Sequence record: NC_061440.1
DNA length: 64,000 nucleotides
Direction: 5' to 3' (one strand)
A program made the position numbers and the translations under genes. Positions 7,710 through 59,537 of the stretch are shown in pieces. The stretch's first letter is position 1. Every line of letters begins with the position of its first letter. The notes under the pieces were generated by a model. The model had not been told where the DNA came from, made no database searches, and saw only the letters and a program-made list of their open reading frames with translations.

Positions 7710-7762
7710 GCATATAATAGGATGAAATCGCCGTATACGCGCCCGTACGCCCGTGATACAAT
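7710..7762 (+). promoter_or_regulatory. Promoter: GCA-N7-GG box plus extended -10
   Basis: GCATATAATAGGATGAAAT ... TGATACAAT. Confidence 0.75.
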
Positions 7763-7788
7763 ACACGTAGACGCTACATGTCGTAGCG

Positions 7789-7819
7789 CATACAACTACT
7801 GCCGAGGGGCACACAATGA
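7789..7819 (+). repeat. 31-bp leader repeat copy 1, containing the SD hairpin TGCC-GAGG-GGCA
   Basis: CATACAACTACTGCCGAGGGGCACACAATGA, identical to 8261-8291. Confidence 0.95.
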
Positions 7820-8190
7820 CTGCTATCAAATTTGCTTCTGTTTACGACATTCTTACCGAGATGGACGAATGCGCCAGAGATGTTGACTTCACCAAGACTC
7901 TTGGCTTCGACCCAATCAAAGTAGAAATTCTGCAATGTGGCTTGCAAGAAGACCTAGGCGTGTACGCTTGTCTACCGAACGCCACAAACATTCTGATTGC
8001 CGATTCTGATGACCTGTTCTCTGAGCACCTTAAAGGTGACGGCGAAATCACGGTCTGCCGCATCTTAACACCGAATGGTGAGATGTTCGATGAACCGGAA
8101 GTCGAAGTCAAACAGCTTGGCACGTTCAACGATTTTGATTCTGCGTATGCTGCGTGGTTAGCGGCGATTAACGAAGAAATCGACAAATAA
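7816..8190 (+). CDS. Acidic hypothetical protein (124 aa)
   Basis: First ORF after a promoter. Confidence 0.8.
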   Translation: MTAIKFASVYDILTEMDECARDVDFTKTLGFDPIKVEILQCGLQEDLGVYACLPNATNILIADSDDLFSEHLKGDGEITVCRILTPNGEMFDEPEVEVKQLGTFNDFDSAYAAWLAAINEEIDK

Positions 8191-8235
8191 TAGGTCAAAA
8201 GCGCCATAGCGATGTGGCGCTGTTTATCGTACTAT
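8183..8235 (+). promoter_or_regulatory. Promoter: box plus -10 (TACTAT)
   Basis: ACAAATAATAGGTCAAAA ... TACTAT; hairpin AGCGCCA..TGGCGCT in the spacer. Confidence 0.6.
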
Positions 8236-8260
8236 ATAGTCTCTAGCGCACTAACGCGCA

Positions 8261-8291
8261 CATACAACTACTGCCGAGGGGCACACAATGA
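8261..8291 (+). repeat. 31-bp leader repeat copy 2, containing an SD hairpin
   Basis: Identical to 7789-7819. Confidence 0.95.
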
Positions 8292-8989
8292 AAGCAGCAA
8301 ACTTTGACGTAGCATTCAACGCGAAAGACGAAGCAACCTTAAACGCATACGCAGCGCAAATCACCGAAGCTCTTAACGCGCTTGGTCGCCACGACCTGAA
8401 GATCAATATCATCTTCGGCACTGACCCGTTCGGCGAACGCCCTGATTTTGTGAATGACCCGAACGGTTTTCGCGTTACACAGAACGGCGAAGAAATTTTT
8501 GATATCTACACGCCGACTGAAAAACAAGTTGAAGGTGATGCGTCAGATGCTTTCATCTACGCTTCATGGGCCGACGGCGAAGCGCCGTGGGGTAAAGACG
8601 TGTCAGACAATGACATTGCAGAAATCGCCGAACACCTGAACGCTGCAATCCCACGCGTCGGCCGTGTGTTCAACGAATCTGATCGTCAGATGCTGCAAAA
8701 ACTCGCCGACACTTTGAACGCTCGTATGGACCGTACTGATGCGCGAGTGATCGTAACGAACGGCGCCGAAGACGATCTCATTGTTATGGTTGTTGGCTAC
8801 GACGAAGAAGAAGATGAAGTCAGTGACGAATACGGCTTCTTCTTGAGCCTGCCGTACACCGATGAAGACGGCACAGACGAGAAATACAGTCTGCACTACG
8901 CAGGCTACCCTGACGTGAACGACCACTCATATAGCTCTGCTGACCTCGACGAGATCTCAGAAGAAATCGAAGCGCTCGATCTGCTCTAG
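8288..8989 (+). CDS. Acidic hypothetical protein (233 aa)
   Basis: D/E-rich ORF after a promoter. Confidence 0.8.
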   Translation: MKAANFDVAFNAKDEATLNAYAAQITEALNALGRHDLKINIIFGTDPFGERPDFVNDPNGFRVTQNGEEIFDIYTPTEKQVEGDASDAFIYASWADGEAPWGKDVSDNDIAEIAEHLNAAIPRVGRVFNESDRQMLQKLADTLNARMDRTDARVIVTNGAEDDLIVMVVGYDEEEDEVSDEYGFFLSLPYTDEDGTDEKYSLHYAGYPDVNDHSYSSADLDEISEEIEALDLL

Positions 8990-9051
8990 TCACTAACTAA
9001 CTGCGGGGTTACGGCCCCGCTTACTTCACAATCTAATTGAGAGAACATACC

Positions 9052-9666
9052 ATGAACCTTATCAATACTTTCTTCGTCAAACGCTCTTACGCTTCTCTGG
9101 CCGCAGGTAACTTTGCAATCGACGCCAAGCACGTACAAGAGCTGGTTGAATGTGAGTGTGTGATCGTACACGTAGACACAGGCCACCGTAATGCGTTCGC
9201 GTTGAAGAACATCTCTATTACGCCTATCGACGAGCACAACGTTCGCATTACGTTCGACCCGCTGACCGACGCACACGCGATGCCTGTGACTGTCATGCCG
9301 AAAGATCTGAAAGGCAGCATTGAAGTATATGGCATGTATGTAGAAGACCTGAAAGACGTGCCACGTTTCAGCGTGTCGAATGACGCATCAGGCAACAATC
9401 CCAATCTGCTGTCGCTTGACCTCGAAAGCCGCCAGCGCTTCGTTCAATACTTCGGTGGCATGTGTACGTTGACTGACCTGTGCCTGACGCTACATGAGAA
9501 AGGCATTCACGTTGTCGATATCCACAACAACGTTAAGCAGCACGATCACGGCGTTGGCGTTTTCACTCAGCGTTATCGCACCGCATTCGAACTGAACAAA
9601 GACAACGGCATTAAGCGCCATAACGACGACTATCCTGTTCTGGCTCGCATGACCGTTTTAATGTAA
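9052..9666 (+). CDS. Hypothetical protein
   Basis: ORF; GAGAG before ATG 9052. Confidence 0.75.
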   Translation: MNLINTFFVKRSYASLAAGNFAIDAKHVQELVECECVIVHVDTGHRNAFALKNISITPIDEHNVRITFDPLTDAHAMPVTVMPKDLKGSIEVYGMYVEDLKDVPRFSVSNDASGNNPNLLSLDLESRQRFVQYFGGMCTLTDLCLTLHEKGIHVVDIHNNVKQHDHGVGVFTQRYRTAFELNKDNGIKRHNDDYPVLARMTVLM

Positions 9667-9714
9667 ACACACCTTGCCTCGCATTGAGCGGGGCTTTTCT
9701 ATTTGGAGAATGCT

Positions 9715-9975
9715 ATGTACCACTATACGCGTGAAGAACTGGAAGAAATGAACTGCATCGAACTGGACCAGCTTGCAAACGAGCGCGGTCTGCTGGAAGA
9801 TAAAGACGATGACGACGATCTGGACAATGACCTGCTCATTGGTATGATTCTTGACGACCAGAACGAACAGCAACTGGCAGACGAAGAAGCCGAAGATAAG
9901 CAACGTGCCGAAGACGACCGCGATCCACGTATCAATCGCCGTGACGGCCAAGACGGTTCAGACGACTATTGCTGA
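9715..9975 (+). CDS. Small acidic protein with a Rho-N/HeH-like N-terminus
   Basis: YTREELEEMNCIELDQLANERGL followed by an Asp run. Confidence 0.7.
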   Translation: MYHYTREELEEMNCIELDQLANERGLLEDKDDDDDLDNDLLIGMILDDQNEQQLADEEAEDKQRAEDDRDPRINRRDGQDGSDDYC

Positions 9976-10033
9976 TTAAGTAAACCAAGAGGCTGCCAAG
10001 CGCTGGTGGCCTCACTCACAAGAAGGAGCAATA

Positions 10034-10381
10034 ATGAAGCGCAAAGTAATATTGATAGACACGGCAGAGTTTCACAACCAACCCATCTCGTTCCCATCGA
10101 TCATTGATTTTGAAGGCATAGACACGGTGGTGTTTGTTGTGAAGTCAAATGGTGAGCACGGAGGCATTGATTATCTCGGTGCGTATTGTGCAACACAAAT
10201 GACAGTTGGCTATACGAAAGTGCCTATGGCGCAGACGTTGAACATCGACGAATATGGCGTTGTGCCTCTCGAAGATGATATGAAGGCCAAGCTACTTCAC
10301 ACCAACCATTACGTTGACGAAGTGCCTGAGCAACATCAAAGCATCTACAGCACGAAGACTGAAATCCTCTTCGCTGAGTAA
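10034..10381 (+). CDS. Hypothetical protein
   Basis: AAGGAG RBS. Confidence 0.75.
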   Translation: MKRKVILIDTAEFHNQPISFPSIIDFEGIDTVVFVVKSNGEHGGIDYLGAYCATQMTVGYTKVPMAQTLNIDEYGVVPLEDDMKAKLLHTNHYVDEVPEQHQSIYSTKTEILFAE

Positions 10382-10386
10382 CCGCA

Positions 10387-10414
10387 AGGGCTGCCATTAT
10401 TGGTGGCCCTTTTT
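10387..10414 (+). terminator. Intrinsic terminator
   Basis: AGGGCTGCCA-TTAT-TGGTGGCCCT followed by TTTT. Confidence 0.8.
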
Positions 10415-10458
10415 CATTTCTGTAAATACCTCGTACATTCACTGATGCGAGAAACACA

Positions 10459-10830
10459 ATGCGCCGCTTTCTGACAGTCTTCAATGTCACTCAACAGGAG
10501 TTTGACGAATTACGCTTTTACCGCCACAAGCTCAACATCGTAACTACCTTACGCCGCACACACGGCATACTGCTGGTGGTACGTGAGACAGGCCGAGTGT
10601 TCAATGTCTCAACTGCCTTGTATCAACAAGCCGAAGAATACGACTTGCGCCGCGTAGACTTCACTGGTCCTGTCGAAGTGACCAAAGAGTTAGGCGAACG
10701 CTTCTCTGAACTCAAGCAGGCAATCGCAAACAACCTGCAGGATAAAAGCATCAACTACTTTGGCCGCACTCTCTCGCTTGACGAAACGCAAGAGCGTTTG
10801 TACGCCACTAAACTGGAGATACTCGTATGA
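10459..10830 (+). CDS. Hypothetical protein
   Basis: ORF. Confidence 0.7.
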   Translation: MRRFLTVFNVTQQEFDELRFYRHKLNIVTTLRRTHGILLVVRETGRVFNVSTALYQQAEEYDLRRVDFTGPVEVTKELGERFSELKQAIANNLQDKSINYFGRTLSLDETQERLYATKLEILV

Positions 10831-11069
10831 CAACAATCGGTGCCTCTCTAGGTGCTCGCTTCGCTGCCACATCTTCGGAGCGTTGTTCTTCCCGCAAGAA
10901 AGCCAAGCCTCGTAACAAGACGCTGACGGCCGCAACAACTGCCGACATCCATAACGCAGTCGAACGCCTGGCAATCAAGTTGAACACGACACGCTCGAAC
11001 GTAATCGAGATCGCACTCAAAGAACTGTGCGCGAAACACGGCATAGCGATAGGCGATACTGATGAGTAA
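10827..11069 (+). CDS. Ribbon-helix-helix DNA-binding protein
   Basis: KTLTAATTADIHNAVERLAIKLNTTRSNVIEIALKEL fits the CopG/Arc RHH pattern. Confidence 0.65.
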   Translation: MTTIGASLGARFAATSSERCSSRKKAKPRNKTLTAATTADIHNAVERLAIKLNTTRSNVIEIALKELCAKHGIAIGDTDE

Positions 11070-11409
11070 CTTTATCTACTGTAGGCTATATGGAGTTCAG
11101 CATCGCCTGAACGTAGAAGGCATCGACTTCTCACAACAGACCGTATCGTATATGGTATCTGCCTCTGATGTGCTGCGCATGATGCCACGCATTCAGGTAG
11201 GTGCGGCCTATGACACGTACACGCCATACAATGTGCTCAAGGCAGGACGCGCTGACTTCAAGATCAAAAAGATTGAGAAGATAAGCGCTGACGAGTGGCG
11301 CTATTCGTTTGTTGATTATGCTGATACGCCGTTCAACACAATTCTTAAACGGAGGTCGTATGTCGATAGGACTGGTGAAAGTCGTCGGCTTAAAAGACAA
11401 AGCGCCTAA
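11062..11409 (+). CDS. Hypothetical protein
   Basis: ORF overlapping its neighbours. Confidence 0.7.
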   Translation: MSNFIYCRLYGVQHRLNVEGIDFSQQTVSYMVSASDVLRMMPRIQVGAAYDTYTPYNVLKAGRADFKIKKIEKISADEWRYSFVDYADTPFNTILKRRSYVDRTGESRRLKRQSA

Positions 11410-11992
11410 AGGGTTTGATTTAGATATCTGCCCTGTGTCGCGTGACGACGATTGGTGGTCATTGAGTCCTTTCTATCTTGGGCCTTGTCGTACACCGAGC
11501 GGTATTATGTTCCACAACATGGAGAACATGTGGCAGTATAGCAAGGTGTACGAAGAACACCTCGTCAACTCGAATGATTTGTTTCACGGCGAAGTATCTG
11601 CCGAGTGGTGGGAGTGGCATTTGAAAGGCAGTACAACCGAACAGGCGCATCGCTATCCAGCGGGTAAGGGTCGAAAGGCCCTGTTCTCGAAATGGGGCGA
11701 CTTGCGCCTTTCGTACATTCCCGCACGAAAACAAATCTACGTGCCTGAATATGCGAAGCTGGTAATCCACAAGCCGAAGTTTAAACGCCTGCTCAAGGAT
11801 TATAAGAAAGGTGCCAAGATAGTCCTCAGAGATTATGACACCTACGATATTCAAAAGGCATATCCAGATTCTCGTAGCCCGTGGTTGTCTGCCATCCAAA
11901 ACGAGAATGCAAAGTTCGGCCATGCGTTCGTCATTGCATTGGCCTTGATGTTCCACGAACGACCACTATGGTATAATCAATGGGTAATCTGA
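11360..11992 (+). CDS. DUF6939-like protein, possibly NADAR-related
   Basis: LSPFYLGP, ENMWQYSKVY, ARKQIYVPEY, FGHAFVIA; GGAGG RBS before ATG 11360. Confidence 0.55.
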   Translation: MSIGLVKVVGLKDKAPKGFDLDICPVSRDDDWWSLSPFYLGPCRTPSGIMFHNMENMWQYSKVYEEHLVNSNDLFHGEVSAEWWEWHLKGSTTEQAHRYPAGKGRKALFSKWGDLRLSYIPARKQIYVPEYAKLVIHKPKFKRLLKDYKKGAKIVLRDYDTYDIQKAYPDSRSPWLSAIQNENAKFGHAFVIALALMFHERPLWYNQWVI

Positions 11993-12300
11993 CCAGATAC
12001 GTAGCCTGCATTGAGTTGTCTACCCGCGAAGGAAATATGAATCTGCCGATTCTACCTCGCTGTGAACTACAAGCATTTGTTCTTGATGGACACACGCAGA
12101 CTAAAGTGCCTATCAAACTTAATGCCACAAACGTCATCAATGTGGCGGGCAAAACGTGTGGTAGTCTGCAATGGTTTGATTGTGTGAATCTGCTCATATG
12201 GTCATCGTTTGATCCTGGCCGGTTTACGCTGTATATTGAACGTGCTTTCAAAACAGACGAGACTACAGACGACCAGCAATCTGCTGAACTCTGCAAATAA
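11980..12300 (+). CDS. Hypothetical protein
   Basis: ORF. Confidence 0.6.
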   Translation: MGNLTRYVACIELSTREGNMNLPILPRCELQAFVLDGHTQTKVPIKLNATNVINVAGKTCGSLQWFDCVNLLIWSSFDPGRFTLYIERAFKTDETTDDQQSAELCK

Positions 12301-12345
12301 TAGGCTAAAATAGCCATTCAGTCAGATACGCTCCTATGATATACT
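12293..12345 (+). promoter_or_regulatory. Promoter: GCA-N7-GG box plus extended -10
   Basis: GCAAATAATAGGCTAAAAT ... TGATATACT. Confidence 0.8.
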
Positions 12346-12374
12346 ATACGTGAGCGCAGTGCTCATTACAACTA

Positions 12375-12388
12375 ACGCTGAGGAGCGT
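12375..12388 (+). promoter_or_regulatory. SD hairpin ACGCT-GAGG-AGCGT
   Basis: GAGG loop starts 12 nt before ATG 12392. Confidence 0.8.
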
Positions 12389-12391
12389 ATC

Positions 12392-12841
12392 ATGACTACT
12401 TTATCTATCACTGATTTGAAAACCCCTGCTGAGTTTACTACTCACCTGACTTTCGGTCACATGGAAGAACTGCGGGCCAGCCTCGAACGCGCCTTAAATC
12501 GTGCCGACCTTGAGGTGTATGTTGATTGTGATTCTAACTACACACTCGAAGAAGCAAACACCGACGGTCCTGACCAGCTGGTGGGCGATCATGAATGTAT
12601 TAACGTTCACGTTCGTTATGCAGGTATGTCGTTCGATGAAGCGACGGCGAAAGGCGTGTGGGATATTTTACTGCAAACCCCGCACGAAGATAACAGCATG
12701 TCCGAGTGGTCTAACTCATACATCATGTATGTGGCCGATGAAAACCTCGACGCGCTGGAAGAAGTGACGATAGAAAACGGGAATCCTCGTATGATGGAAA
12801 CTCTCGTTGATCGTATTAACTACTGGCTGCCAAAACTCTAA
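12392..12841 (+). CDS. Acidic hypothetical protein
   Basis: ORF after a promoter and SD hairpin. Confidence 0.8.
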   Translation: MTTLSITDLKTPAEFTTHLTFGHMEELRASLERALNRADLEVYVDCDSNYTLEEANTDGPDQLVGDHECINVHVRYAGMSFDEATAKGVWDILLQTPHEDNSMSEWSNSYIMYVADENLDALEEVTIENGNPRMMETLVDRINYWLPKL

Positions 12842-12843
12842 GC

Positions 12844-12881
12844 GATTTGTGAAGGGCATTTGCGAGTGCCCTTTGAAAATC
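12844..12881 (+). repeat. Repeated intergenic hairpin, copy 1
   Basis: GATTTGTGAAGGGCATTTGCGAGTGCCCTTTGAAAATC, near-identical to 13226-13265. Confidence 0.9.
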
Positions 12882-12889
12882 AAACACCA

Positions 12890-12905
12890 TAAGCTGAGGA
12901 GCTTA
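12890..12905 (+). promoter_or_regulatory. SD hairpin TAAGCT-GAGG-AGCTTA
   Basis: Part of the 24-bp repeat at 12887-12910 and 13689-13712. Confidence 0.85.
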
Positions 12906-12907
12906 AC

Positions 12908-13225
12908 ATGTCATCTTCTACCACTCTGACTTTCATCTTCCCAGAAATGACCACTCTGGAAGTATCTATCGGTAATGGCATTGTGCCTGCGTATCTGGGT
13001 CTCGCAGAAAATAGAGACATAACATTCAGCGACGTTAAGGCGCTGCGTCTGATGGGTGACTCAAACATCGTGGGTGCCATGTCACGCTTCGACCAGTCGA
13101 TGTTGAATCTGCTGATTGACCGTCACATCTCACATGAGAATGTTCGCTGCCGTGACGCCATAGACGCGGGCACCGAGCACTTCCCGTCTACTTGTCTTTA
13201 TCTGAAAGTAGCGCACCACCGCTAA
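12908..13225 (+). CDS. Hypothetical protein
   Basis: ORF. Confidence 0.75.
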   Translation: MSSSTTLTFIFPEMTTLEVSIGNGIVPAYLGLAENRDITFSDVKALRLMGDSNIVGAMSRFDQSMLNLLIDRHISHENVRCRDAIDAGTEHFPSTCLYLKVAHHR

Positions 13226-13265: not shown

Positions 13266-13271
13266 ACAACC

Positions 13272-17732: not shown

Positions 17733-18134
17733 ATGGAAAAGACGTACATGACACATTGGGGTTCGCGTTACGTGCGAGCTCCGTCCGGTAAGTGGTATTC
17801 AGTTCATGGACGTGAAGGTACTTGGGTAACGAACCGCTATGGTACCTCATTCTATCGTAGCGGTTCGGAGGTATGGCGGGACATAACTATTGCGGATCGT
17901 GAGTCGCTGGAACGTGAGCTAATCAAACGTACCAACGAAGACTACACCGAGCAAAAGCGTAGGTATGACTACTGGGGAAGACTGGTGCGAGCGATTGCTC
18001 GTCAGTCGGAAGAGGAGAAGAATGAGCATACGGCAGAGCTTGCCGGGATGATTGAAGCGCTTAGACAGACTTTCTATGGACAGAAGGTACAGCAACTAAG
18101 CACAATTCTGGACGAAATAGCCGTTAAGAAGTAG
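17733..18134 (+). CDS. Hypothetical protein
   Basis: ORF. Confidence 0.7.
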   Translation: MEKTYMTHWGSRYVRAPSGKWYSVHGREGTWVTNRYGTSFYRSGSEVWRDITIADRESLERELIKRTNEDYTEQKRRYDYWGRLVRAIARQSEEEKNEHTAELAGMIEALRQTFYGQKVQQLSTILDEIAVKK

Positions 18135-18152
18135 ACTAATTCGTGATACAAT
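18100..18152 (+). promoter_or_regulatory. Promoter: GCA-N7-GG box plus extended -10
   Basis: GCACAATTCTGGACGAAAT ... TGATACAAT. Confidence 0.75.
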
Positions 18153-20802: not shown

Positions 20803-21228
20803 ATGGCCAAGCATCATACCTTTCGTTTGAATGACCTGTGCGCTATTATGCCTAAGCGCGGTGTGCATGGTCCTCAGCAGGGTGAGCACGTTGTCATCGT
20901 TGGTCGCCATCCCGATCTGAATGAGTACACCATCTACTATAAAGATGGTCTGTATGGTTGGTTCAAAGCCGAAGACCTTGCGCTCGTTAGACACGATGCC
21001 CACGAACAACTCGAATTGTGGGAAGACGCATACAATGAACGCTGTGCGCTCGACCGTGAGCAGGATGATGAAGTCCAGATGCGTGAGCTTGACGCAATCG
21101 CTGCGAAGCTGGACTTGTCAGATGCAGGCAAATGTTGCGAGTGCGGAAAAGACCTCGATCCCGAAGACGGTGCAGATGATACGATGTGTCTGACCTGTCG
21201 CTGCGATGTAGATTTTGGAGATAGATAA
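20803..21228 (+). CDS. SH3-like domain plus C-terminal Zn finger
   Basis: N-terminus homologous to the radical SAM N-terminus; CCEC...CLTC. Confidence 0.7.
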   Translation: MAKHHTFRLNDLCAIMPKRGVHGPQQGEHVVIVGRHPDLNEYTIYYKDGLYGWFKAEDLALVRHDAHEQLELWEDAYNERCALDREQDDEVQMRELDAIAAKLDLSDAGKCCECGKDLDPEDGADDTMCLTCRCDVDFGDR

Positions 21229-21491
21229 TGGCTGTAGGCTTTGTAAAAGATGATGGCGTTAACGATACCATCGAAGCTAACCTGAACAACGAGATTGACC
21301 GCGCCCGTGCTGAACTGCTAGGCAAAGGCACCACGCACTGCATCAACCCTGAGTGTGGTGCAGAGATTCCACTGATGCGCCGTGTCGCTATGCCGAATGC
21401 TCGTTACTGTGTGGCCTGTCAATCAAGCCACGATGGTTCGGCTGTTAGCCACTACAATCGTCGTGGCTCAAAAGATTCTCAATTGAGGTAG
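21228..21491 (+). CDS. ybiI: DksA/TraR C4-type zinc finger protein, YbiI-like
   Basis: C..PEC...IP..RR.A.P....C..CQ; C-terminus YNRRGSKDSQLR as I recall for E. coli YbiI. Confidence 0.9.
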   Translation: MAVGFVKDDGVNDTIEANLNNEIDRARAELLGKGTTHCINPECGAEIPLMRRVAMPNARYCVACQSSHDGSAVSHYNRRGSKDSQLR

Positions 21492-23380: not shown

Positions 23381-23713
23381 ATGGAAAAGGTAACCAATGC
23401 TGTAAATGCAGTATGCGGTAAGTTCGTGCTGCCAATCTATATCGGCGAATCCGACATGAACCCGTACATAGGCAAGGCGTTCTGGGATAGTCTGGTCTTG
23501 CGTGACGATCTGTTCAAAGAACCAGAAACTCGTCAAGTCATTCACAACGACGAGCGTATGAACCGCACCGAGTTTATTCGCGTGTCAACTGTCTATGATG
23601 TTGTGCAGGCGTTGAAGCGCTGCCGCAGTTATATCCGCTACTTCGAGTATATCAGTGACGAAGACATTGATATCCTGGTTGAAGCGCTCGAACATTACAT
23701 CGACGAAGAATGA
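23381..23713 (+). CDS. Hypothetical protein
   Basis: ORF. Confidence 0.7.
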   Translation: MEKVTNAVNAVCGKFVLPIYIGESDMNPYIGKAFWDSLVLRDDLFKEPETRQVIHNDERMNRTEFIRVSTVYDVVQALKRCRSYIRYFEYISDEDIDILVEALEHYIDEE

Positions 23714-26237: not shown

Positions 26238-27218
26238 ATGCGTTTTGGTTTCGCCTGCAAATTGCTTGACGCAAACAACAAACAGCCATTCACGAATAAG
26301 AGCCTTAGCTATAAACATTTCTCTGCGTTGTCTGCTGCTGACCAACATACGAAACTGTTGGAAGTTGTCACGCATAACCTGACTTCATTGCTTGATATGA
26401 TCAAGCACGTTGGTCGTCTGCGTACAGACCTGCGCATGTTTCGAATCACCAGTGAATTGTTGCCTCTGTACACTCACCCTAAAGTGTTTCACATGTACAT
26501 GCGCCATGACGTTGTTACTATCACCGAATCGCTACTCGCCTTGTGTGGTGAAGCGGCTAGACGTCATGACGTGCGATTATCATTTCATCCAGGTCAGTTC
26601 ACGGTACTCGCATCTGATCGACCAGATGTTGTCCAGAACTCAATAGCCGAACTTGAGTATCATGCGTACTGTGCCTATCACATGGGGTATGGTCGCCGCT
26701 TCCAAGACTTCAAGATCAACATTCACCTTAGCGGTAGACTTGGCGCTTCGGGATTCAGGCAAGCGCATTCGAAACTTTCTGATCGCTGCCGGAACATGTT
26801 GACCGTAGAGAACGACGAAATCACTTCGAGCCTCGAAGATTGTTTAGCGCTGGCAGACATATGCCCGATCGTCCTCGACATTCATCATCACTGGGTAATG
26901 ACTAACGAATACATACAACCGACCGACGACCGTGTTCAGCGTGTCATTGATTCTTGGCGAGGCGTTCGACCTGCTGCTCACTACTCTGTGTCAAAGCCTG
27001 AGTTTGTACCATCGCGTGGACTGCCCGACCAGAACAAGCTGTCCGCTAATCGAATGCAGTTACGTGCTCATGCTGATTATTACCACAACGAAGACGTAAA
27101 CGAGTGGGCCACTAGTTTCACTGATTTTGACCTGATGTGTGAGTCAAAAGCGAAAAATAGGGCTAGACTGAAACTGGCGTGTTTTAGCGTCAACTCTGCA
27201 AATAATTGGACAAAATGA
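26238..27218 (+). CDS. uvsE: UV damage endonuclease (UVDE/UvsE)
   Basis: RFGFAC, FRITSELLP..THP, RLSFHPGQF, LTVENDE, VLDIHHH, HYS, AHADY, LMCESKAK. Confidence 0.95.
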   Translation: MRFGFACKLLDANNKQPFTNKSLSYKHFSALSAADQHTKLLEVVTHNLTSLLDMIKHVGRLRTDLRMFRITSELLPLYTHPKVFHMYMRHDVVTITESLLALCGEAARRHDVRLSFHPGQFTVLASDRPDVVQNSIAELEYHAYCAYHMGYGRRFQDFKINIHLSGRLGASGFRQAHSKLSDRCRNMLTVENDEITSSLEDCLALADICPIVLDIHHHWVMTNEYIQPTDDRVQRVIDSWRGVRPAAHYSVSKPEFVPSRGLPDQNKLSANRMQLRAHADYYHNEDVNEWATSFTDFDLMCESKAKNRARLKLACFSVNSANNWTK

Positions 27219-27251
27219 GGCTTGTTTACGAAGGTAGCCCTGTGATACACT
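27198..27251 (+). promoter_or_regulatory. Promoter: GCA-N7-GG box plus extended -10
   Basis: GCAAATAATTGGACAAAAT..TTGTTT..TGATACACT. Confidence 0.75.
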
Positions 27252-27303
27252 AGATATGAGCGTTATCGCTCGTATAACTAGACTGACACAAGGAAATAAG
27301 ACA

Positions 27304-29438: not shown

Positions 29439-30628
29439 CCGAAGATGAAATGAACATCGACCACATTCGCAACGCCACGAAATCTATCTTCACTTCTGGC
29501 ACCGTTCAGCAACGTGACGCTCTGCGTTCAATCGCTAACACTGTGCTTGCTCCTAACGCCATGTTTGCGTGTGAAGTCGAGGCGCCTGATGTGGAAACCG
29601 CGTATCGTCTGCTGGAAGAAATCAAATTCACTGGCGACGGCACTAACATGCTTCCTGCCGATGAAGTGTATGCGCTCGATTCCATTCTGAGTAAGAAGTG
29701 GAAGAAAGACTTCTTTGAAGCAGTGCGCAATATCGCGCTGACAATGTACAGCACCGACCCTGTGTCTGCCGGTAAAGGCTTCTGGCCACGCAATCAAGGC
29801 GAGTTCAATCAGTTGATCACTCGCGCTTTCGTCTGGGTGTTGGCTCAAGAAGGTCTGAAAAATCTTTTGAAAGATTCGACTGTCGTTAGCCATACGCGTC
29901 TTGCTCAATTCATGATCGCAACGCAACTCGTAGGCAAAGACGAACCGAATCTGCGCCACTTCACAACGTATCGTCCATATCAGGACACAGGTGGTGTGAA
30001 CTGCGACAACATTCTGCCTGAGTCTTATCTCGAACAAATTCGCGCAGAACGCCGTGCAGGCCAGCCGCCAGAATATGAAGCTGCCAAGAACATGTCGTTC
30101 TCTGACCTGGCTGATTTGTGTGAGCGCTTGAACGTCATTGGCCCGGGTTCGACTAAACCCGTAACCTGTAATTGCCCTGTCGGTGAACTTTGCGAATGCG
30201 AAGAAGACGAATACCAGACGCGTGACGATTTTGACGAAGACCAGGAGGAGTTGCTGGAAGAGTTCTATCGTAAATTCGGCTTCCCTCACGATGAAGATGA
30301 AGACGAGCCCGAAGAAGAAATCTGGCGCGAAGGTATCTCGCTCATGGAAGTTGAAGTCGATCTGCCTACTGTGCGTCTGACTCTTCCAGAAGCCGGTGTC
30401 CGCAGAGACTCACGCATGAAAAAGCCGATGCAGAAATCTCGCCGTAACAAGATTCTGCTTACGGCTGAACAACAAATCTGGCACAAGGTTGATACTGACC
30501 CTGTGTCCGCAGATCGTCGCTTCGCTATCAGCCTCGTATCTCGTCATACGTGCGGTGTTAGTCGCCCTGTCGCCACGCAGCGTGAAGCACTGGCAATCGC
30601 CGCTGCTTTAGCTGAACTCTGCAAGTAA
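29435..30628 (+). CDS. Hypothetical protein (397 aa) with an acidic stretch and a C.C..G..C.C motif
   Basis: Long ORF. Confidence 0.8.
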   Translation: MTEDEMNIDHIRNATKSIFTSGTVQQRDALRSIANTVLAPNAMFACEVEAPDVETAYRLLEEIKFTGDGTNMLPADEVYALDSILSKKWKKDFFEAVRNIALTMYSTDPVSAGKGFWPRNQGEFNQLITRAFVWVLAQEGLKNLLKDSTVVSHTRLAQFMIATQLVGKDEPNLRHFTTYRPYQDTGGVNCDNILPESYLEQIRAERRAGQPPEYEAAKNMSFSDLADLCERLNVIGPGSTKPVTCNCPVGELCECEEDEYQTRDDFDEDQEELLEEFYRKFGFPHDEDEDEPEEEIWREGISLMEVEVDLPTVRLTLPEAGVRRDSRMKKPMQKSRRNKILLTAEQQIWHKVDTDPVSADRRFAISLVSRHTCGVSRPVATQREALAIAAALAELCK

Positions 30629-30673
30629 CTGGTCAGAATAGCGCTTCTTCGTGAGGCGCTTCTATGATACAAT
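30621..30673 (+). promoter_or_regulatory. Promoter: GCA-N7-GG box plus extended -10, with a hairpin in the spacer
   Basis: GCAAGTAACTGGTCAGAAT ... TGATACAAT. Confidence 0.75.
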
Positions 30674-34905: not shown

Positions 34906-35847
34906 ATGACTAAAATGATCAACATGCCGTTTGCTACTTCTTCTAGTCGTAGCTCATTCTTCTCGGCAAAAGTTCGTGAACTCGATCTCCAGAGCGTCTG
35001 GAGCTACGTTGTATCAAACAACAATCCACAATGGCAAGGCGACCCATTGCTGCACCACATGCACTATCATTCTACCGAGCACATGAAGCAAGTAACTGCT
35101 CTCGCCCTGTGGCTGCTGAATGAAGAAGCCGAACAACCATGGCAGTATGATCTGGGTGCGCTGCCTCTGGCTATCGCCTGTATGTTCCACGATATGCACC
35201 ACTCTCTTGGCCGCTTGAGCGATGCAGTCAACGTGCGTACTGCACAAGACGCTTTCAAACAATATGTGACCGTGTGTGAAGACCAACGCATTATCGACCA
35301 GCAGGAAATCATTCTCGAACTGATAGGCGTTACGGAATTCCCGTACATGAAGAATCGCCAGCCGAAGAATCTGGTTGAGCGTTGCATTCGTGATGCGGAT
35401 ATTCTCTACGGTATGCAGGACGATGCACTGGACGTTGTGATGTTCGCACTGCGCCGTGAAGTGAATCGTGCCGTGAACAAGCCAACACACTTCACGCCAG
35501 AACAGTGGGCAGTAGGTCGTGTTGACTTCCTCATGTCTGTTGAGATGTATACGCCTACAGCAAATGCGATCATGGACTGGCTGTTGGCAAAAGACAACGA
35601 TCACAATCATCAGTCTAAGATTGATAGCTGGATGCGGGATAACGTTATCTTCCGTGATACGTCAGCACACAAGCTCCAGGCCAATGATGTGTTGTTTATC
35701 GACACTGAGGCAGACAGTACGCCGAAGCGCCGTTTGATTGAACGTGTTGAGTCAGTACATCCGTACATCAACTTCTATTTCCACGACGGCGAAGCTATCT
35801 CGCTGCGTGACGGTGAGAGTTGTGTGGTCTGCGAAAGACGCAAATAA
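34906..35847 (+). CDS. HD-domain phosphohydrolase
   Basis: YHSTEH, ACMFHDMHH, IGVTEFP, IRDADIL. Confidence 0.8.
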   Translation: MTKMINMPFATSSSRSSFFSAKVRELDLQSVWSYVVSNNNPQWQGDPLLHHMHYHSTEHMKQVTALALWLLNEEAEQPWQYDLGALPLAIACMFHDMHHSLGRLSDAVNVRTAQDAFKQYVTVCEDQRIIDQQEIILELIGVTEFPYMKNRQPKNLVERCIRDADILYGMQDDALDVVMFALRREVNRAVNKPTHFTPEQWAVGRVDFLMSVEMYTPTANAIMDWLLAKDNDHNHQSKIDSWMRDNVIFRDTSAHKLQANDVLFIDTEADSTPKRRLIERVESVHPYINFYFHDGEAISLRDGESCVVCERRK

Positions 35848-35891
35848 TAGGCTGAAATAGGCGTATACGAACCACGTGCCTGTGATATAAT
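35840..35891 (+). promoter_or_regulatory. Promoter: GCA-N7-GG box plus extended -10
   Basis: GCAAATAATAGGCTGAAAT ... TGATATAAT. Confidence 0.8.
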
Positions 35892-39698: not shown

Positions 39699-39998
39699 AT
39701 GCCACGCGAACAAATTCTGATGAATGACGTTGCTATCGTCCTGACCATGAGCGAACGTCGTGCGTTCTTGGGACCTAAAGCTGATGGCTTCGTGTACCTG
39801 CCGTCGAAAGAAGCTCTCACGAAGTTTGAGGCTCATATCAAACGTTATGGTAGTCGTGATGAGTATGCGTTCATCGAGCACCGCGAACTGCACTCTATAA
39901 ACTCTGAGGGCATCGTTGCTCTTGCTCATGAAGTAGAGACTGACTCTGAGCGCCCGTGGCTGTGGACGAAAGAAGACTTCCGCGTTAAGCTCTGGTAA
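39699..39998 (+). CDS. Hypothetical protein
   Basis: GAGGT RBS. Confidence 0.75.
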   Translation: MPREQILMNDVAIVLTMSERRAFLGPKADGFVYLPSKEALTKFEAHIKRYGSRDEYAFIEHRELHSINSEGIVALAHEVETDSERPWLWTKEDFRVKLW

Positions 39999-40051
39999 GC
40001 ATAAAACTGGCTAAAATCGTGGTATCAATTTAAGCCCGACTGTGATATACT
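39999..40051 (+). promoter_or_regulatory. Promoter: GCA-N7-GG box plus extended -10
   Basis: GCATAAAACTGGCTAAAAT ... TGATATACT. Confidence 0.8.
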
Positions 40052-40083
40052 AAAAGCGTAGCGATGCTGCGCTTTTTCACTTA

Positions 40084-41933: not shown

Positions 41934-42129
41934 TCAAGATGATGTGAATGGTAGAATTGCTGCGGCCGACGAGCAACGTCAGAAAGAGCGTGAATCACGC
42001 TATGATGATTGGTCGATCGACGACCTGCGTGATGCTCTGCTTGAGAATGGTCTTGTATTTGACGGTGAAGACGTAGACGACTACAGCCGCGCAGACTGTA
42101 TCAGACTGTTACTGGCTGATGGGTTCTAA
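41926..42129 (+). CDS. Small protein with an HeH-like module
   Basis: DWSIDDLRDALLENGL..DYSRADCIRLL. Confidence 0.7.
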   Translation: MSSQDDVNGRIAAADEQRQKERESRYDDWSIDDLRDALLENGLVFDGEDVDDYSRADCIRLLLADGF

Positions 42130-42182
42130 GCACAAAACTGGACAAAATCGTGGTTGTCTCAAATAGCTGCCTGAACTATACT
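42130..42182 (+). promoter_or_regulatory. Promoter: GCA-N7-GG box, -35 TTGTCT, -10 TATACT
   Basis: GCACAAAACTGGACAAAATCGTGGTTGT, shared almost exactly with 43143. Confidence 0.8.
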
Positions 42183-42188
42183 ATATAG

Positions 42189-42366
42189 ACAGCGAGACAA
42201 CTATCTCTCTGTATGCCTTTGTTACTGCTTGACCGTGTGTTTTTCGATTTTCCCGGACACACGGTCCTTTTTAAAGTGGACTTCGCTGAGGTTCCTTTAA
42301 AAAGGGTTCGATACCCTTTGAGCGCGTCGGGCTTTACGCGGTTTCCGCCTTACGTGCTCTCATGCT
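42189..42366 (+). ncRNA. Candidate sRNA or structured leader with a T-loop-like hairpin
   Basis: 10-bp stem GACCGTGTGT/ACACACGGTC plus T run; AAGGG-TTCGATA-CCCTT. Confidence 0.45.
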
Positions 42367-42386
42367 AAACCGCAAAGGAAATTGAA

Positions 42387-43094: not shown

Positions 43095-43142
43095 GCAATA
43101 ATGAGCAGGCAGTGTAGTAGCTGCCTGCTATCTGCGAAGTAT

Positions 43143-43196
43143 GCAGAAAACTGGACAAAATCGTGGTTGTTATCTGAAAGCAACCTATGCTATACT
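43143..43196 (+). promoter_or_regulatory. Promoter: GCA-N7-GG box plus extended -10
   Basis: GCAGAAAACTGGACAAAAT ... TGCTATACT. Confidence 0.8.
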
Positions 43197-46584: not shown

Positions 46585-47042
46585 AAAAAGCAAAGGTAGT
46601 AATTAGTCGTGGTGGATATCGACCGGCCTCCCACGAAGAAGCACAAAAGCTGGTGGTCGAAATGTTGTTAGCTTCAATCGGCGTTGACCCTACTATACTG
46701 AGCCAACAAATGCTGTTGAACGTTGCGAACTATAACTTCCTGACGTCAATCGCAGATACAGGCAAAGCAAATAACGCGAACCAGACAACTCTGCATAAAA
46801 CTGTAAAAGAACTTAATGCGTTTTGTAGATTGCACAAGATTCCGCTGGGCTTGCTAATTATGCCCCATACATCGGCTAGTGATTATGCTGGTGATGAGGT
46901 TGTAGCGATTCCATGGGAGCATGTGCTTAAAAACACATTAAGCCAGAACGCTGTCAATTCCCTGTTCCAAACAGTCGAAGCTGATGGCTATCCGCAGTTT
47001 GTGACTGACGCGAAAACAGTAGAGGAATACAATGTTTTATGA
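46581..47042 (+). CDS. Hypothetical protein
   Basis: ATGA coupling. Confidence 0.7.
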   Translation: MKKAKVVISRGGYRPASHEEAQKLVVEMLLASIGVDPTILSQQMLLNVANYNFLTSIADTGKANNANQTTLHKTVKELNAFCRLHKIPLGLLIMPHTSASDYAGDEVVAIPWEHVLKNTLSQNAVNSLFQTVEADGYPQFVTDAKTVEEYNVL

Positions 47043-53807: not shown

Positions 53808-54025
53808 GTCCTGATCTGAACCAGCCGCCCCTCTAGTTCTAACGAATGAGCGAGGGGCAAATATTCGTGTTAAAATGATGCGAATATTTTTGTAAAAAGT
53901 TTCAAAATTCCTGTTGTCGTATGTTGAACATAATAATGTATGACTACAGGAAATCAAACCTGAATAAATTTATCTTTTCATCCAGCGGTGAAAACGCCGC
54001 ATCAAATATAAAGTAAGGAACTATC

Positions 54026-54544: not shown

Positions 54545-54576
54545 GCAAGCGCCGCGCATTAGCGGTACTTGATTCG

Positions 54577-54608
54577 AAAGGGCAGCGCTGACGAGCGTTT
54601 GCCCTTTT
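54577..54608 (+). terminator. Intrinsic terminator
   Basis: AAAGGGCA-GCGCT-GACG-AGCGT-TTGCCCTTTT. Confidence 0.8.
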
Positions 54609-54641
54609 GTCATATCTGTGTCAATTTTCGAGGTGAATCGA

Positions 54642-55124
54642 ATGTCTGCCGAACATCTGCTCAACGACGACCTGCCTGACGACTCCTTAGTTGTCCCTGC
54701 ACTCAAACAGGACAAGCCTTCCTATTACGACTTGATGACGCTACGCTTAGAAGCTGGCGCACGTCTTGCTCGCTCCCTTAAAACTCTGGTCGATGCGCGT
54801 GTCATTCACGGTCCAGCGTTAAACGACCTGCTTCCATCCGCGTTGCGTATCGCTGAAACCCACTGGGCTGATATCTGCAACGGCCTAACTCCTGTCCATG
54901 ATGAGAAGAATAAAATCACGCTTGTTGGCAATCTGCCTGCATGTATTGAAGCGTTCCGCATTGTCGTTATGGAACATGCACAACGTAACGCACTGGAACT
55001 TGAGTGTCGTAACATGGTGGCACACGGCGATGGCTTTAAGCTGCTGACTCGCCCTCAACTGCTGCATATTGAACCTAAACACGTCTGCGATGGAAACTGC
55101 GACCATGACTCAAAAGCTGTCTGA
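54642..55124 (+). CDS. Hypothetical protein
   Basis: GAGGT RBS. Confidence 0.75.
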   Translation: MSAEHLLNDDLPDDSLVVPALKQDKPSYYDLMTLRLEAGARLARSLKTLVDARVIHGPALNDLLPSALRIAETHWADICNGLTPVHDEKNKITLVGNLPACIEAFRIVVMEHAQRNALELECRNMVAHGDGFKLLTRPQLLHIEPKHVCDGNCDHDSKAV

Positions 55125-55647
55125 GCAACTCAACCGATATTTCAACCTCATGGAGAAAATCCGTGAGCAACTGTTCCGCACTCTGCCTGTGTCCGACCGT
55201 TACATGTGCATCGTAAGTTTCAGCACACAATACCAAGCATTGCAATGCGACCTCGTTAGCAAAGAGAGCCTGCTGCCTGCTAAACTCATCGAAGGCCTGA
55301 CTGGTCAAGAGCTGGTGGTGTATGGAACAATCAAAGCCCAGATTGAAAAGTGGGTTGCAGACGGTATGGTCGATGACTTCCCTATCGCGCAGGACGCCGA
55401 CACGTATGCTCAATATCGTGTGTCTGTCGGTGATGCAGAAACAGACCAGAGCCGTCAGACGATAGCTGATGAGGACTTGGCTGCGTATGTTGAATCGTTG
55501 CCTAAGTCAGATGCCCTGAAATACGTTGACCCTCTGAGCAAGTATGAGCTGGCTATTCTCTGCAAAGCATGGGGCATTCCCCAAGATGCCAGTGAGACTG
55601 TCATGCTGTCTCTCATCAAGGGTCATATTCTGCGCCGCGCTTCCTAA
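55105..55647 (+). CDS. Hypothetical protein with a C-terminal SAP/HeH-like segment
   Basis: LSKYELAILCKAWGI....SETVMLSLIK. Confidence 0.7.
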   Translation: MTQKLSEQLNRYFNLMEKIREQLFRTLPVSDRYMCIVSFSTQYQALQCDLVSKESLLPAKLIEGLTGQELVVYGTIKAQIEKWVADGMVDDFPIAQDADTYAQYRVSVGDAETDQSRQTIADEDLAAYVESLPKSDALKYVDPLSKYELAILCKAWGIPQDASETVMLSLIKGHILRRAS

Positions 55648-55657
55648 CTCAAACTCT

Positions 55658-55710
55658 GCATATTTCTGGACAGAACCTGAGTAGCGTCTAATACTTTCGT
55701 ATGATATAAT
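55658..55710 (+). promoter_or_regulatory. Promoter: GCA-N7-GG box plus extended -10
   Basis: GCATATTTCTGGACAGAA ... TGATATAAT. Confidence 0.8.
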
Positions 55711-55774
55711 AGCTTGAGACAAGTAGTGTCTGAACATGCTAATATCGAGTAGTTAACGCTACTCATAGGAGAAC

Positions 55775-57808: not shown

Positions 57809-57811
57809 GTA

Positions 57812-59464
57812 ATGGCAATTACGCCGAAGAAAGTCAAAAAGGTCAAAGCGACTGCCGTAGCAAAAGCCGCTAAGCCTGCAAAGCTCAAGTCGAAAGCGGT
57901 ATCTGCTGACGACATTAAAAAGAAGAAAAAGAAAAGCACCGAAGCGTCTGCAACAACGGCGGTCGGCACTTCTCTCTATCCGATGCTCGGACAAGACGAG
58001 TCGCTGATTCGTGACGAGAACCTCGCGGACTATACGCGCCGTGCTCTCTTCCAGTACGGCTCATACGTTGTTGAAGATCGTGCTATCGCTGACTACCGTG
58101 ACGGCCTCAAGCCTGTACACCGTGCGCTGCTTTGGTCGCTATGTGACTTGGGCTTACGTCCCGGCGGAGCATTCAAGAAGTCTGCACGTACCGTTGGTGA
58201 TGCGTTAGGTAAGTATCACCCGCACGGCGATGCTGCTTGTTACGGTGCGATGGTAACGATTGCGAATACCGTGCCACCAGCCGTAGCAGGTCAAGGTAAC
58301 TGGGGCGACCCTGTAGCACCTGCTGCTGCGATGCGTTATACCGAAGCGAAGATGAGTAAGTTTGCGGGTAGCTTCCTGCTGGACCCAGACTATCTCGAAG
58401 TGACGCCGATGGTAGACAACTTCTCGAACGACATGAAGATACCTCTGTATCTGCCTGCGCTGCTGCCGTACATGTTGTTCAATGGTAGTGTGCCTGCTCC
58501 AGCGTATGGAGTTAAGTGCGGTAACCCATCGTTCAGCTTTACGTCAGTCAGTAAGGTCGTGTGTGACATGCTGGCTGGCAAAGAGTACGATGCGAAGAAA
58601 CTGGCGAAGACGCTTGAGATTAACCACGAGTACGGTTGTCTTGACGCAAGCTCCGATGCTGACTATCTCGCACTGATCGAAACAGGTCGCGGCAAAGTAA
58701 CATACGAACCTCAGATGAAGGTCGATGAGAAGACGAAGACCATCACTGTGCAAACGTATGTGCCGGGCGGTATGTCTAACAACGCAGCCATCACGAAGAA
58801 GCTGGAGAAGATTGCAGAGTGGTCTGGTGTTGTCTCTGCGTCGAACGCCAGCTCGAAGAAGAACAAAGACGCGGGCCCGTGGGGTGCAGCGTTTGCGATT
58901 CGTTGTCGTGGTAGCGAAGACCTGCTGTATGAGATTGCGGAGAAGGTGAAGAAAGAAATCACCAGCGCCATCAACTACTCGCTGGGTGTTACCGTTCGCC
59001 GTGCTGATGCTTCAAACAAGTTCATGTACCTGAGCTACGTGAAGTATTTCAAAGCGTGGATTGCGTATCGCATTAAGCTGGAAACTGCGATGCTCACCAA
59101 CAAGAAGGCGAAAGCAGAGAAAGCCCTTCATCTGCAAGAAGTCTACTTGTGGGCAGTTGACAACATGAAGCAACTGCTGGCCGCACTACCGAAAGCCCTG
59201 ACCGCAGAAGACCCAGACAAGATGCTGGCGAAGCTGTGTAAGATTCCTGTTGAAGATGCGAAAATCATCCTCGACCGTCAAGTGCGTAAACTGGCGAAAC
59301 TAGAACGTGCTGGGCTGGTGGCCAAGATTAAGGAAATCAAGGCCGAGATTGCAGAGTATAAAGCGGGACTGAAAGAGCCTGGTAAATACGCTGCTGCGGG
59401 CACGGCCGCTAAAGTTAAGGCATACCTGAAATCGCCTGACGATAAGCTGCCTGTCGGTCTGTAA
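57812..59464 (+). CDS. Type IIA topoisomerase A subunit (GyrA/ParC-like, no beta-pinwheel CTD)
   Basis: DGLKPVHR, KKSARTVG, YHPHGD, GQGNWG, AAMRYTE (catalytic Tyr). Confidence 0.97.
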   Translation: MAITPKKVKKVKATAVAKAAKPAKLKSKAVSADDIKKKKKKSTEASATTAVGTSLYPMLGQDESLIRDENLADYTRRALFQYGSYVVEDRAIADYRDGLKPVHRALLWSLCDLGLRPGGAFKKSARTVGDALGKYHPHGDAACYGAMVTIANTVPPAVAGQGNWGDPVAPAAAMRYTEAKMSKFAGSFLLDPDYLEVTPMVDNFSNDMKIPLYLPALLPYMLFNGSVPAPAYGVKCGNPSFSFTSVSKVVCDMLAGKEYDAKKLAKTLEINHEYGCLDASSDADYLALIETGRGKVTYEPQMKVDEKTKTITVQTYVPGGMSNNAAITKKLEKIAEWSGVVSASNASSKKNKDAGPWGAAFAIRCRGSEDLLYEIAEKVKKEITSAINYSLGVTVRRADASNKFMYLSYVKYFKAWIAYRIKLETAMLTNKKAKAEKALHLQEVYLWAVDNMKQLLAALPKALTAEDPDKMLAKLCKIPVEDAKIILDRQVRKLAKLERAGLVAKIKEIKAEIAEYKAGLKEPGKYAAAGTAAKVKAYLKSPDDKLPVGL

Positions 59465-59485
59465 GAAATCTGTAAATACAACTAA

Positions 59486-59537
59486 GCATATTCTAGGACG
59501 AAACGCGGTTGTATCTGTATGTCAATTCTGTTACAAT
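59486..59537 (+). promoter_or_regulatory. Promoter: GCA-N7-GG box, -35 TTGTAT, extended -10 TGTTACAAT
   Basis: 17-bp spacer between -35 and -10. Confidence 0.75.

Follow-up and report, generated by a model that had tools for sequence, protein, structure and literature searches.

The terminal 64 kb of the genome of Erwinia phage pEa_SNUABM_22 contain 12 sigma-70-like promoters that share a conserved 25-bp upstream element, referred to here as the box, which is phased with the -10 hexamer. The stretch analyzed (the window, 64,000 nucleotides) corresponds to positions 201,147-265,146 of record NC_061440 (265,146 bp, Alexandravirus), and its bases 7000-13000 are 100% identical to this phage. As a feature, the box is real and statistically solid. 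Its function is interpreted more cautiously: the box may be the binding site for a phage-specified factor that acts with the sigma-70 polymerase in the zone of UP elements and activators, a reading to which slightly less than an even chance is given.

pEa_SNUABM_22 is a jumbo myovirus placed in a group with PaBG, Lu11, AD1, Y3, and Yoloswag (PMC7412058). PaBG and Lu11 are assigned to jumbo phage subgroup 2.2 of Iyer et al., whose members encode sigma factors and no RNA polymerase of their own (PMC7824862). The sole sigma factor annotated in the record is gp244 (198,542-199,579); the matches of its family profile are weak, with 24 of 26 being sigma factors and the top scores falling on region 2 of primary sigma factors.

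Architecture of the Box Promoters

An initial annotation had proposed that 12 promoters carry a GCA-N7-GG element, and all 12 coordinates were borne out, every one on the + strand (sites are named below by the window position at which GCA begins). GCA is present in 11 of the 12 boxes, with ACA at 8183, whereas GG, and RAA 3 nt after it, are found in all 12. The distance from the base preceding GG to the -10 element is 37-39 nt, in agreement with the initial annotation; measured between the G of GCA and the first -10 base, it is 47 nt at eight sites, 46 nt at two, and 48 nt at two. This spacing also bears out the proposed location, between -60 and -40. The -10 hexamers (TACAAT, TATACT, TATAAT, TACACT, and TACTAT) conform to TAnnnT throughout, and a TG one base before the hexamer gives 10 of 12 promoters (all except 8183 and 42130) the look of the extended -10, sigma-70-type promoters that had been described. 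The -35 region is weak (T[T/A]Gnnn, 1.9 bits).

The full box is longer than first described. It reads AACTCT-GCAaATAAnnGG-nCAAAAT and extends over 25 bp from about -65 to -41, the added conserved block AACTCT occupying the 6 nt upstream of GCA. Taking the -10 element as -12 to -7 places the core box at -59 to -41, with its 3' end 5 bp from the -35 hexamer. Two similar half-sites can be recognized, cTG-CAAAT and cTGGaCAAAAT (yTG..CAAA(A)T), with CAAA cores 12 bp apart. When the G of GCA is numbered 1, the bases G1, C2, G11, and G12 show little or no variation.

Information content was calculated over positions -6 to 19 with a small-sample correction and amounts to 27.5 bits for the box, compared with 11.3 bits for the TGn/-10 element and 1.9 bits for the -35 hexamer; about 15.4 bits would suffice to single out 12 sites in the pEa_SNUABM_22 genome. 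This information content and the invariant GCA and GG indicate that the box is not a plain UP element.

The bare pattern GCA-N7-GG-N3-RAA is only modestly enriched (14 matches versus 4.2 expected; none of 100 shuffles reached 14). When RCA was allowed and a TAnnnT was required 27-31 nt further on, 12 matches were obtained in the window and 12 in the entire 265,146-bp genome, against an expectation of 0.44 per window and a maximum of 3 among 200 first-order Markov surrogates. A weight matrix built from the 12 sites scores them at 25-37 bits, while the rest of the window reaches at most 12.5 bits and the rest of the genome at most 17. The scan of the whole genome with this matrix yielded no further copies, and all 12 lie between record positions 208,856 and 260,632. 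A partial box, AACTCTGCATAAAACTGTAAAAGAAC, is present inside gp327 (46787-46812; 12.5 bits); it lacks GG, has no -10 element at the proper distance, and is probably a chance match or a decayed copy.

At five sites (8183, 12293, 27198, 30621, and 35840), the stop codon of the preceding open reading frame (ORF) falls within the box. It is TAA in GCAAATAA at four of them and TGA (27216-27218) at 27198. Coding constraint or a stop-codon function was rejected as an explanation of the box, as most boxes are intergenic and the variants of other genera lack stop codons. Gene conversion or a mobile cassette was likewise discarded: only particular columns are uniform, and spacers and flanks differ among the promoters within one genome. 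Nor does the box resemble a displaced -35 element read by a phage sigma factor, for which it is too far from the -10 element and the stretch that would hold a matching -10 is unconserved.

Lineage-Specific Variants of the Box in Related Phages

All 12 promoters occur at orthologous positions in Alexandra and in Dickeya phage AD1, and the 46-48 nt spacing to the -10 element is maintained. Across these three Alexandravirus genomes the box is the most constrained part of the promoter, with a mean pairwise identity among orthologues of 0.90, compared with 0.80 for TGn/-10, 0.77 for the -35 region, 0.62 for the spacer, and 0.63 for upstream sequence. The initial proposal that fixed GCA and GG positions reflect sequence-specific reading, rather than a plain A/T-rich UP element, is thus strengthened by the information content, the invariant G/C positions, and a conservation exceeding that of the -10 element.

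Four more distant relatives, Yoloswag, fHe-Yen9-02, JA11, and PaBG, were compared over 60-92 kb of each genome. The same architecture is found in related genera, with the box at the same distance from the -10 element and in variants particular to each lineage. The Alexandravirus variant is ctGGnCAAAAT. The box reads gCAAAt...TGGTCAAAA in Yoloswag (11 sites; host Erwinia amylovora), GCAAATa.gcGGCTAAAAT (GCGGCTAAAAT) in fHe-Yen9-02 (10 sites; host Yersinia enterocolitica), and GCAAAt..gTGTCCAAAAt (TGTCCAAAAT) in JA11 (8 sites; host Dickeya solani). Position 12 is G in 36/36 Alexandravirus and 11/11 Yoloswag sites, and T in 8/8 JA11 sites. AD1 and JA11, both isolated on D. solani MK10, differ at this position with p = 8e-6 (G in 12/12 versus 0/8), and positions 13 and 14 are likewise lineage-dependent (p = 1e-4 to 4e-2). 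Since the JA11 sites were initially found with the Alexandravirus matrix, which prefers G, the search was unbiased against G.

The variants are uniform inside each genome, and those of pEa_SNUABM_22 and Yoloswag differ even though both phages infect E. amylovora. Orthologous promoters, such as the one upstream of the topoisomerase genes, for which an orthologue was found in every enterobacterial lineage examined, bear the variant of their own lineage and therefore point to concerted change after the lineages split. Such a change would be expected from an altered trans-acting reader and is hard to explain by the host alpha subunit's C-terminal domain (alpha-CTD) or by a host factor. In PaBG, which infects Pseudomonas, three TG-extended promoters carry an unrelated motif, CTAnnnnCnTAACCnnTA; it begins 47 nt upstream of the -10 element, a distance shared with the enterobacterial phages. 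More distant relatives in IMG/VR have a TGTAAA(C/T) motif in place of the box upstream of the topoisomerase gene.

The architecture appears to be restricted to this clade. An exact-pattern scan of IMG/VR for the box and -10 element returned 36 matches, 21 of them in the clade; the other 15 lie on contigs of 28-42% G+C without a convincing extended -10 and look like chance matches. The TG version was matched 11 times in 596 Gb of bacterial and archaeal genomes, nine times at scattered places outside Enterobacterales and twice on contigs JAVWLC010000226.1 and JAVWLC010000053.1 of a Raoultibacter sp. metagenome-assembled genome. Both contigs carry a complete box promoter with a 5' hairpin (locus L098, 4193-4248, and locus L106, 745-801, respectively) and evidently represent mis-binned phage DNA of the Alexandravirus type. 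Based on these two scans, unrelated enterobacterial phages and host chromosomes lack the architecture.

A Model for Reading of the Box and Its Alternatives

Almost all TG-extended -10 matches in intergenic gaps of the genome belong to box promoters, and the 17-kb stretch around the sigma gene contains 7 sigma-70-like matches, compared with 17.2 in shuffles. The 12 box promoters thus appear to be the only host-type promoters of the phage. They tile the window from 7.7 to 64 kb as 12 tandem units, often without an intervening terminator, and probably form the early class, an order of expression suggested by this layout and by analogy with T4.

A simple model would be that host sigma-70 RNA polymerase reads the promoters through the TG-extended -10 element and the weak -35 region, while a phage-specified factor, bound to the box, recruits or stabilizes the polymerase via alpha-CTD and/or sigma region 4. 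The half-sites occupy the zone of alpha-CTD and of class I/II activators, and this position, together with the strict phasing with the -10 element, suggests an activator-like contact of that kind; the A-tracts of the half-sites may be shared with alpha-CTD. The outcome would be a private and very strong promoter code for the phage. The factor could be virion-borne or made early with positive feedback. Because no earlier host-type promoter class was found, the reader would have to come from the virion, arise through positive feedback, or reside in a modified polymerase; an activator expressed from an earlier promoter class is unlikely, given that the box promoters seem to be the only host-type ones. 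A virion-delivered protein has a precedent in T4 Alt (PMC2988021).

Part of the initial proposal, a regulon read by a phage-specific factor, gains comparative support from the differences between host-sharing lineages and from the PaBG motif; the reader protein itself was not found. Pfam and PHROG scans of about 30 window proteins conserved between lineages gave no DNA-binding domain, the sole match of interest being gp280, whose DksA/TraR zinc finger is not a DNA binder. This negative result weighs against the model, as do several further points. Promoters that are used first would need an activator arriving with the DNA, and no such protein is known here. The extended -10 elements are good, so that an activator may be unneeded. 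The A-rich half-sites coincide with the distal and proximal UP subsites, and part of what is seen could come from alpha-CTD. Only a few positions, mainly 12-14, are lineage-specific, and outside Alexandravirus each set is small, with 8-11 sites.

In a more specific version of the model, the DNA of each lineage is accompanied into the cell by an adaptor; by docking on alpha-CTD or sigma region 4, the adaptor would confer on the polymerase specificity for a private 25-bp box. In this specific form the idea is unlikely. If true, it would represent an appropriation of the polymerase's upstream contacts at the very first promoters used, and co-evolution of adaptor and box would explain GG in Alexandravirus and Yoloswag, GT in JA11, and the wholly different box in PaBG.

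The host polymerase might alternatively read the box by itself, as a specialized UP element contacted solely by two alpha-CTDs, perhaps modified by the phage, with the additional conserved bases tuning DNA shape or bending to produce very strong early promoters as in T4. The UP consensus, nnAAAWWTWTTTTnnAAAAnnn, consists of A/T only, with no conserved G/C and little information. Like UP elements, the box is positioned between -60 and -40 (its core at -59 to -41 lies within the UP zone), has two subsites or half-sites separated by roughly one helical turn, carries an A-tract beside the -35 region (about -45 to -41), and is associated with strong promoters. The proximal subsite is resembled by AAA(A)T (-45 to -41), and the beginning of the distal subsite by CAAAT(AAT) (-58 to -51). 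Yet the actual agreement with the consensus goes no further than AAA (-44 to -42) and the initial A/T run, and an A/T consensus accounts neither for 27.5 bits with G1, C2, G11, and G12 nor for the lineage variants. Between the half-sites (positions 6-10), the boxes of Yoloswag, fHe-Yen9-02, and JA11 are mixed rather than A/T-rich, and the PaBG motif is unrelated and not A/T-rich either. The concerted change of variants between phages of one host also stands against reading by alpha-CTD, whose DNA-binding residues are expected to be conserved across these hosts. An apparently early class would suit this explanation in that no phage protein synthesis is required, and T4 early promoters also carry an unexplained extra consensus, with the injected Alt protein altering how alpha reads DNA (PMC2988021). 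On balance we regard reading by alpha-CTD alone as somewhat unlikely, although it is the strongest of the alternatives. The evidence for a phage-specified reader would equally fit a shut-off operator, in which the promoters fire early without aid, as their good extended -10 elements could allow, until an early phage protein occupies the box, prevents alpha-CTD/UP contacts, and shuts the class down when phage-specific promoters take over. Such a reader would be made from these very promoters, making an injected protein unnecessary, and two further motif classes, CTGTAAAT and nCTAATTT (described below), are available for the switch. Repressors, however, usually overlap the -35 or -10 element or the start site, while sites at -65 to -41 usually belong to activators; the strict spacing of 46-48 nt suggests a stereospecific contact with the polymerase, and the protein scans provided no candidate for a repressor either. 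An operator role is therefore considered quite improbable.

Still less probable, and indeed very unlikely, is activation through the box by a hijacked host factor, that is, by an abundant enterobacterial DNA-binding protein. The distribution of the box, which occurs in phages infecting Erwinia, Dickeya, and Yersinia but gives way to a different motif in PaBG, a phage of Pseudomonas, would be compatible with such a factor, and the box has a loose likeness to the MarA/SoxS/Rob site in its GCA and YAAA elements. However, AD1 and JA11 on one strain, and pEa_SNUABM_22 and Yoloswag on E. amylovora, use differing and uniform variants, and the box-plus-promoter architecture is absent from the Enterobacterales genomes and unrelated phages scanned. 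Comparison with the consensus sequences of individual host sites led to the rejection of each. The marbox (GCAC and YAAA in a 20-bp asymmetric site) has both of its elements in the box, but the GCA-CAAA spacing (G1 to C14) is 13 bp at all sites instead of 11, i.e., 2 bp too long. The G..C ends of a Fis site are 15 bp apart rather than the 14 bp seen here, an IHF site agrees at 5/9 positions in Alexandravirus and at fewer elsewhere, and the LexA pattern CTG-N10-CAG is opposed by CTG-N10-GAC. A sigma-54 promoter was rejected on the wrong GG-GC spacing, which would also leave the conserved -10 element unexplained, and sigma-28 on comparison with its consensus.

Comparison with Known Phage Promoters

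T4 early promoters, together with Alt, are similar in belonging to a large lytic myovirus that depends on the host polymerase and in showing extra consensus beyond UP, -35, TGn, and -10 (PMC2988021). In contrast to T4, where the -35 element is strong, the box promoters have nearly no -35 element, and the box dominates their information. We know of no discrete G/C-containing box at fixed spacing in T4 early promoters.

The initial annotation had invoked a logic like that of MotA. T4 MotA/AsiA middle promoters do combine a phage-specific box with a host-type -10 element, often TG-extended, and a weak or missing -35. In detail, the comparison does not hold. The MotA box is 9 bp long, is centered at -30, replaces the -35 element, and serves a middle class that needs early proteins, whereas the box described here is unrelated in sequence, is centered at about -52, leaves a weak T[T/A]G -35 in place, and belongs to a class that is seemingly used first. 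Scans of about 30 window proteins and of the sigma gene, out of 342 genes in the genome, gave no match to MotA or AsiA homologues.

The late promoters activated by P2 Ogr or P4 delta and the Mu promoters activated by Mor or C are alike in having a good -10, a poor -35, and a phage-specific element at about -65 to -35, and their activators work via alpha and/or sigma region 4, as proposed here. Unlike the box, which is asymmetric, direct-repeat-like, and linked to an apparent early class, the sites of these activators are dyad-symmetric (for Ogr, TGT-N12-ACA centered near -55) and serve middle or late genes. Identity with the Ogr dyad was rejected on the lack of dyad symmetry (TGC-N10-ACA in Alexandravirus, with TCC replacing ACA in JA11).

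PeSL cassettes of T4-like phages resemble the present case in comprising many near-identical sigma-70-like early promoters with stem-loops, set in regions of small, variable hypothetical ORFs (PMC2839356, PMC4122927). The PeSL stem-loop, however, is a terminator joined to the promoter, while here a terminator-like hairpin precedes the box at 7710 and 43143 only (2/12), the hairpins seen regularly are those predicted at transcript 5' ends, and the conserved part is the box and -10 element, not a whole cassette. By analogy, the closest logic would be that of T4 early promoters with Alt and of activator-dependent phage promoters such as those of P2 Ogr and Mu Mor. Judged by its sequence, the box acts like an upstream activator or UP module and is not a MotA box, marbox, Ogr dyad, or canonical UP element, as a defining feature of each failed in the comparison.

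The Twelve Predicted Transcription Units

Genes in the window are nearly all on the + strand and annotated as hypothetical, with exceptions that include topoisomerase II subunits, a UvsE-like endonuclease, and an RNA 2'-phosphotransferase. Box promoter 1 (7704-7762; box 7704-7728, -10 TACAAT at 7757-7762) is preceded by a terminator hairpin at about 7649-7677 and drives gp253 (7816), whose stop codon falls in the box of promoter 2 (8177-8235; the ACA variant without TG, -10 TACTAT at 8230-8235), which drives gp254 (8288). The leaders of these two genes share an identical stretch of about 30 nt, CATACAACTACTGCCGAGGGGCACACAATG (7788-7818 and 8260-8290), that reaches into the ATG, although the promoters themselves differ. 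Promoter 3 (12287-12345; TATACT at 12340-12345), with the gp262 stop codon in its box, drives gp263 (12392). The box of promoter 4 (18094-18152; TACAAT at 18147-18152) lies in the 3' end of gp274, and transcription would cover gp275 (18202) onward. That of promoter 5 (27192-27251; TACACT at 27246-27251) is inside the final codons of gp293, which encodes the UvsE-like endonuclease, and the promoter drives gp294 (27304). Promoter 6 (30615-30673; TACAAT at 30668-30673) drives gp301 (30740), and promoter 7 (35834-35891; TATAAT at 35886-35891) drives gp311 (35924).

Promoter 8 (39993-40051; TATACT at 40046-40051) drives gp318 (40102). Promoter 9 (42124-42182; TATACT at 42177-42182), which lacks TG, is followed by a leader of about 200 nt and gp323 (42387). 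Promoter 10 (43137-43196; TATACT at 43191-43196) drives gp324 (43260) and the conserved block gp324-gp335, and promoter 11 (55652-55710; TATAAT at 55705-55710) the topoisomerase II genes gp336 and gp337. Promoter 12 (59480-59537; TACAAT at 59532-59537), with a CTGTAAAT motif directly 5' of it at 59470, is separated by a leader of about 260 nt from gp338-gp342. The leaders of promoters 9 (42183-42386) and 12 (59538-59804) are unusually long, and the latter opens with a predicted hairpin of -22 kcal/mol. Rfam and tRNA scans of the window, including the long leaders, returned nothing.

At 11 of the 12 box promoters, the exception being 35840, a stem-loop is predicted in the first few bases of the transcript, about 6-45 nt past the -10 element (for example, at 12352-12368, 27258-27275, 40058-40074, and 59549-59583; mean z = -2.2 against shuffles). 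These predicted 5' hairpins may stabilize the mRNA. Many ribosome-binding sites read nnCTGAGGAGnn with flanks able to pair (12378, 12894, 13276, 13696, 40087, 43244, and similar ones); pairing there would put GAGG in the loop of a small hairpin immediately 5' of the ATG.

Other Probable Promoter Classes and Candidate Regulators

A second motif, (a/t)aTCTGTAAAT(a), is probably a promoter class read through a phage-encoded sigma factor. Genome-wide, 33 of 34 CTGTAAAT copies are co-oriented with genes, in both gene-strand domains, and the copies include one upstream of gp244, the sigma gene. Copies in the window are found at 3594, 10420, 28538, 51391, 52247, 52900, 52956, and 59470, and inside ORFs at 23400, 48194, 48707, and 63733. 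The motif is one base off the T4 late promoter, TATAAATA, and upstream of the topoisomerase gene of distant relatives it takes the place of the box.

A third motif, nCTAATTT, has the orientation of the genes in 19 of 20 copies, of which 12 lie no more than 80 nt (31-53 nt) upstream of an ORF start. It is mostly found in the minus-strand domain that holds the structural genes, mainly record positions 65-186 kb, with one copy preceding the endolysin gene, and likely represents a late promoter class. A copy is also present at window position 5909, upstream of gp252 (5957-7645); if the motif marks the late class, gp252 would be a late gene immediately before the first box promoter. Separately, a box-less TG-extended -10 element, TGTTAAAAT, is located at 53868 in a 218-nt gap before gp333, flanked by a 10-bp inverted repeat, CAAATATTCG ... 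CGAATATTTG (53858-53889), that looks like an operator overlapping a promoter.

Two window proteins may be relevant to transcription. gp280 (21228-21491) contains a C4 zinc finger of the DksA/TraR type (Pfam E = 9e-12) and is 66-72% identical to its counterparts in Yoloswag, fHe-Yen9-02, and JA11. DksA/TraR-type proteins bind the secondary channel of the polymerase, and gp280 may be an additional phage modulator of host transcription. The operon of box promoter 12 includes gp341 (62,461-63,603), whose PaBG orthologue, gene 112, was proposed as a possible second sigma factor (PMC7412058). The family profile of gp341 gave no sequence match in the PDB, and no significant similarity to the gp244 sigma family emerged from profile-profile comparison; with its AlphaFold model (mean predicted local distance difference test score 75.8), Foldseek returned scattered weak sigma-factor matches amid noise (E = 0.4-3.5). 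If gp341 is a second sigma factor, it would connect the early class to the next one.

Implications

Phage-specific upstream promoter elements are already known; the variant described here is new, and it occurs in a group whose transcription program is undescribed. A literature search found no paper on promoters of Alexandravirus, Yoloswagvirus, Salmondvirus, or the PaBG and Lu11 relatives. The box defines 12 transcription units and sharpens the annotation of phages used against fire blight and soft rot. The promoters are also compact and are candidates for expression in Enterobacterales that is strong and may depend on infection.

More generally, the box offers a precise handle on the first step of host takeover. 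Its information exceeds that of the polymerase's own recognition elements, and its variants follow the phage lineage, not the host. The natural variants of AD1 and JA11 in one host strain make the idea of a phage-specified reader directly testable; such a reader, if it exists, would be a new way of giving the host polymerase a private code at the start of infection.

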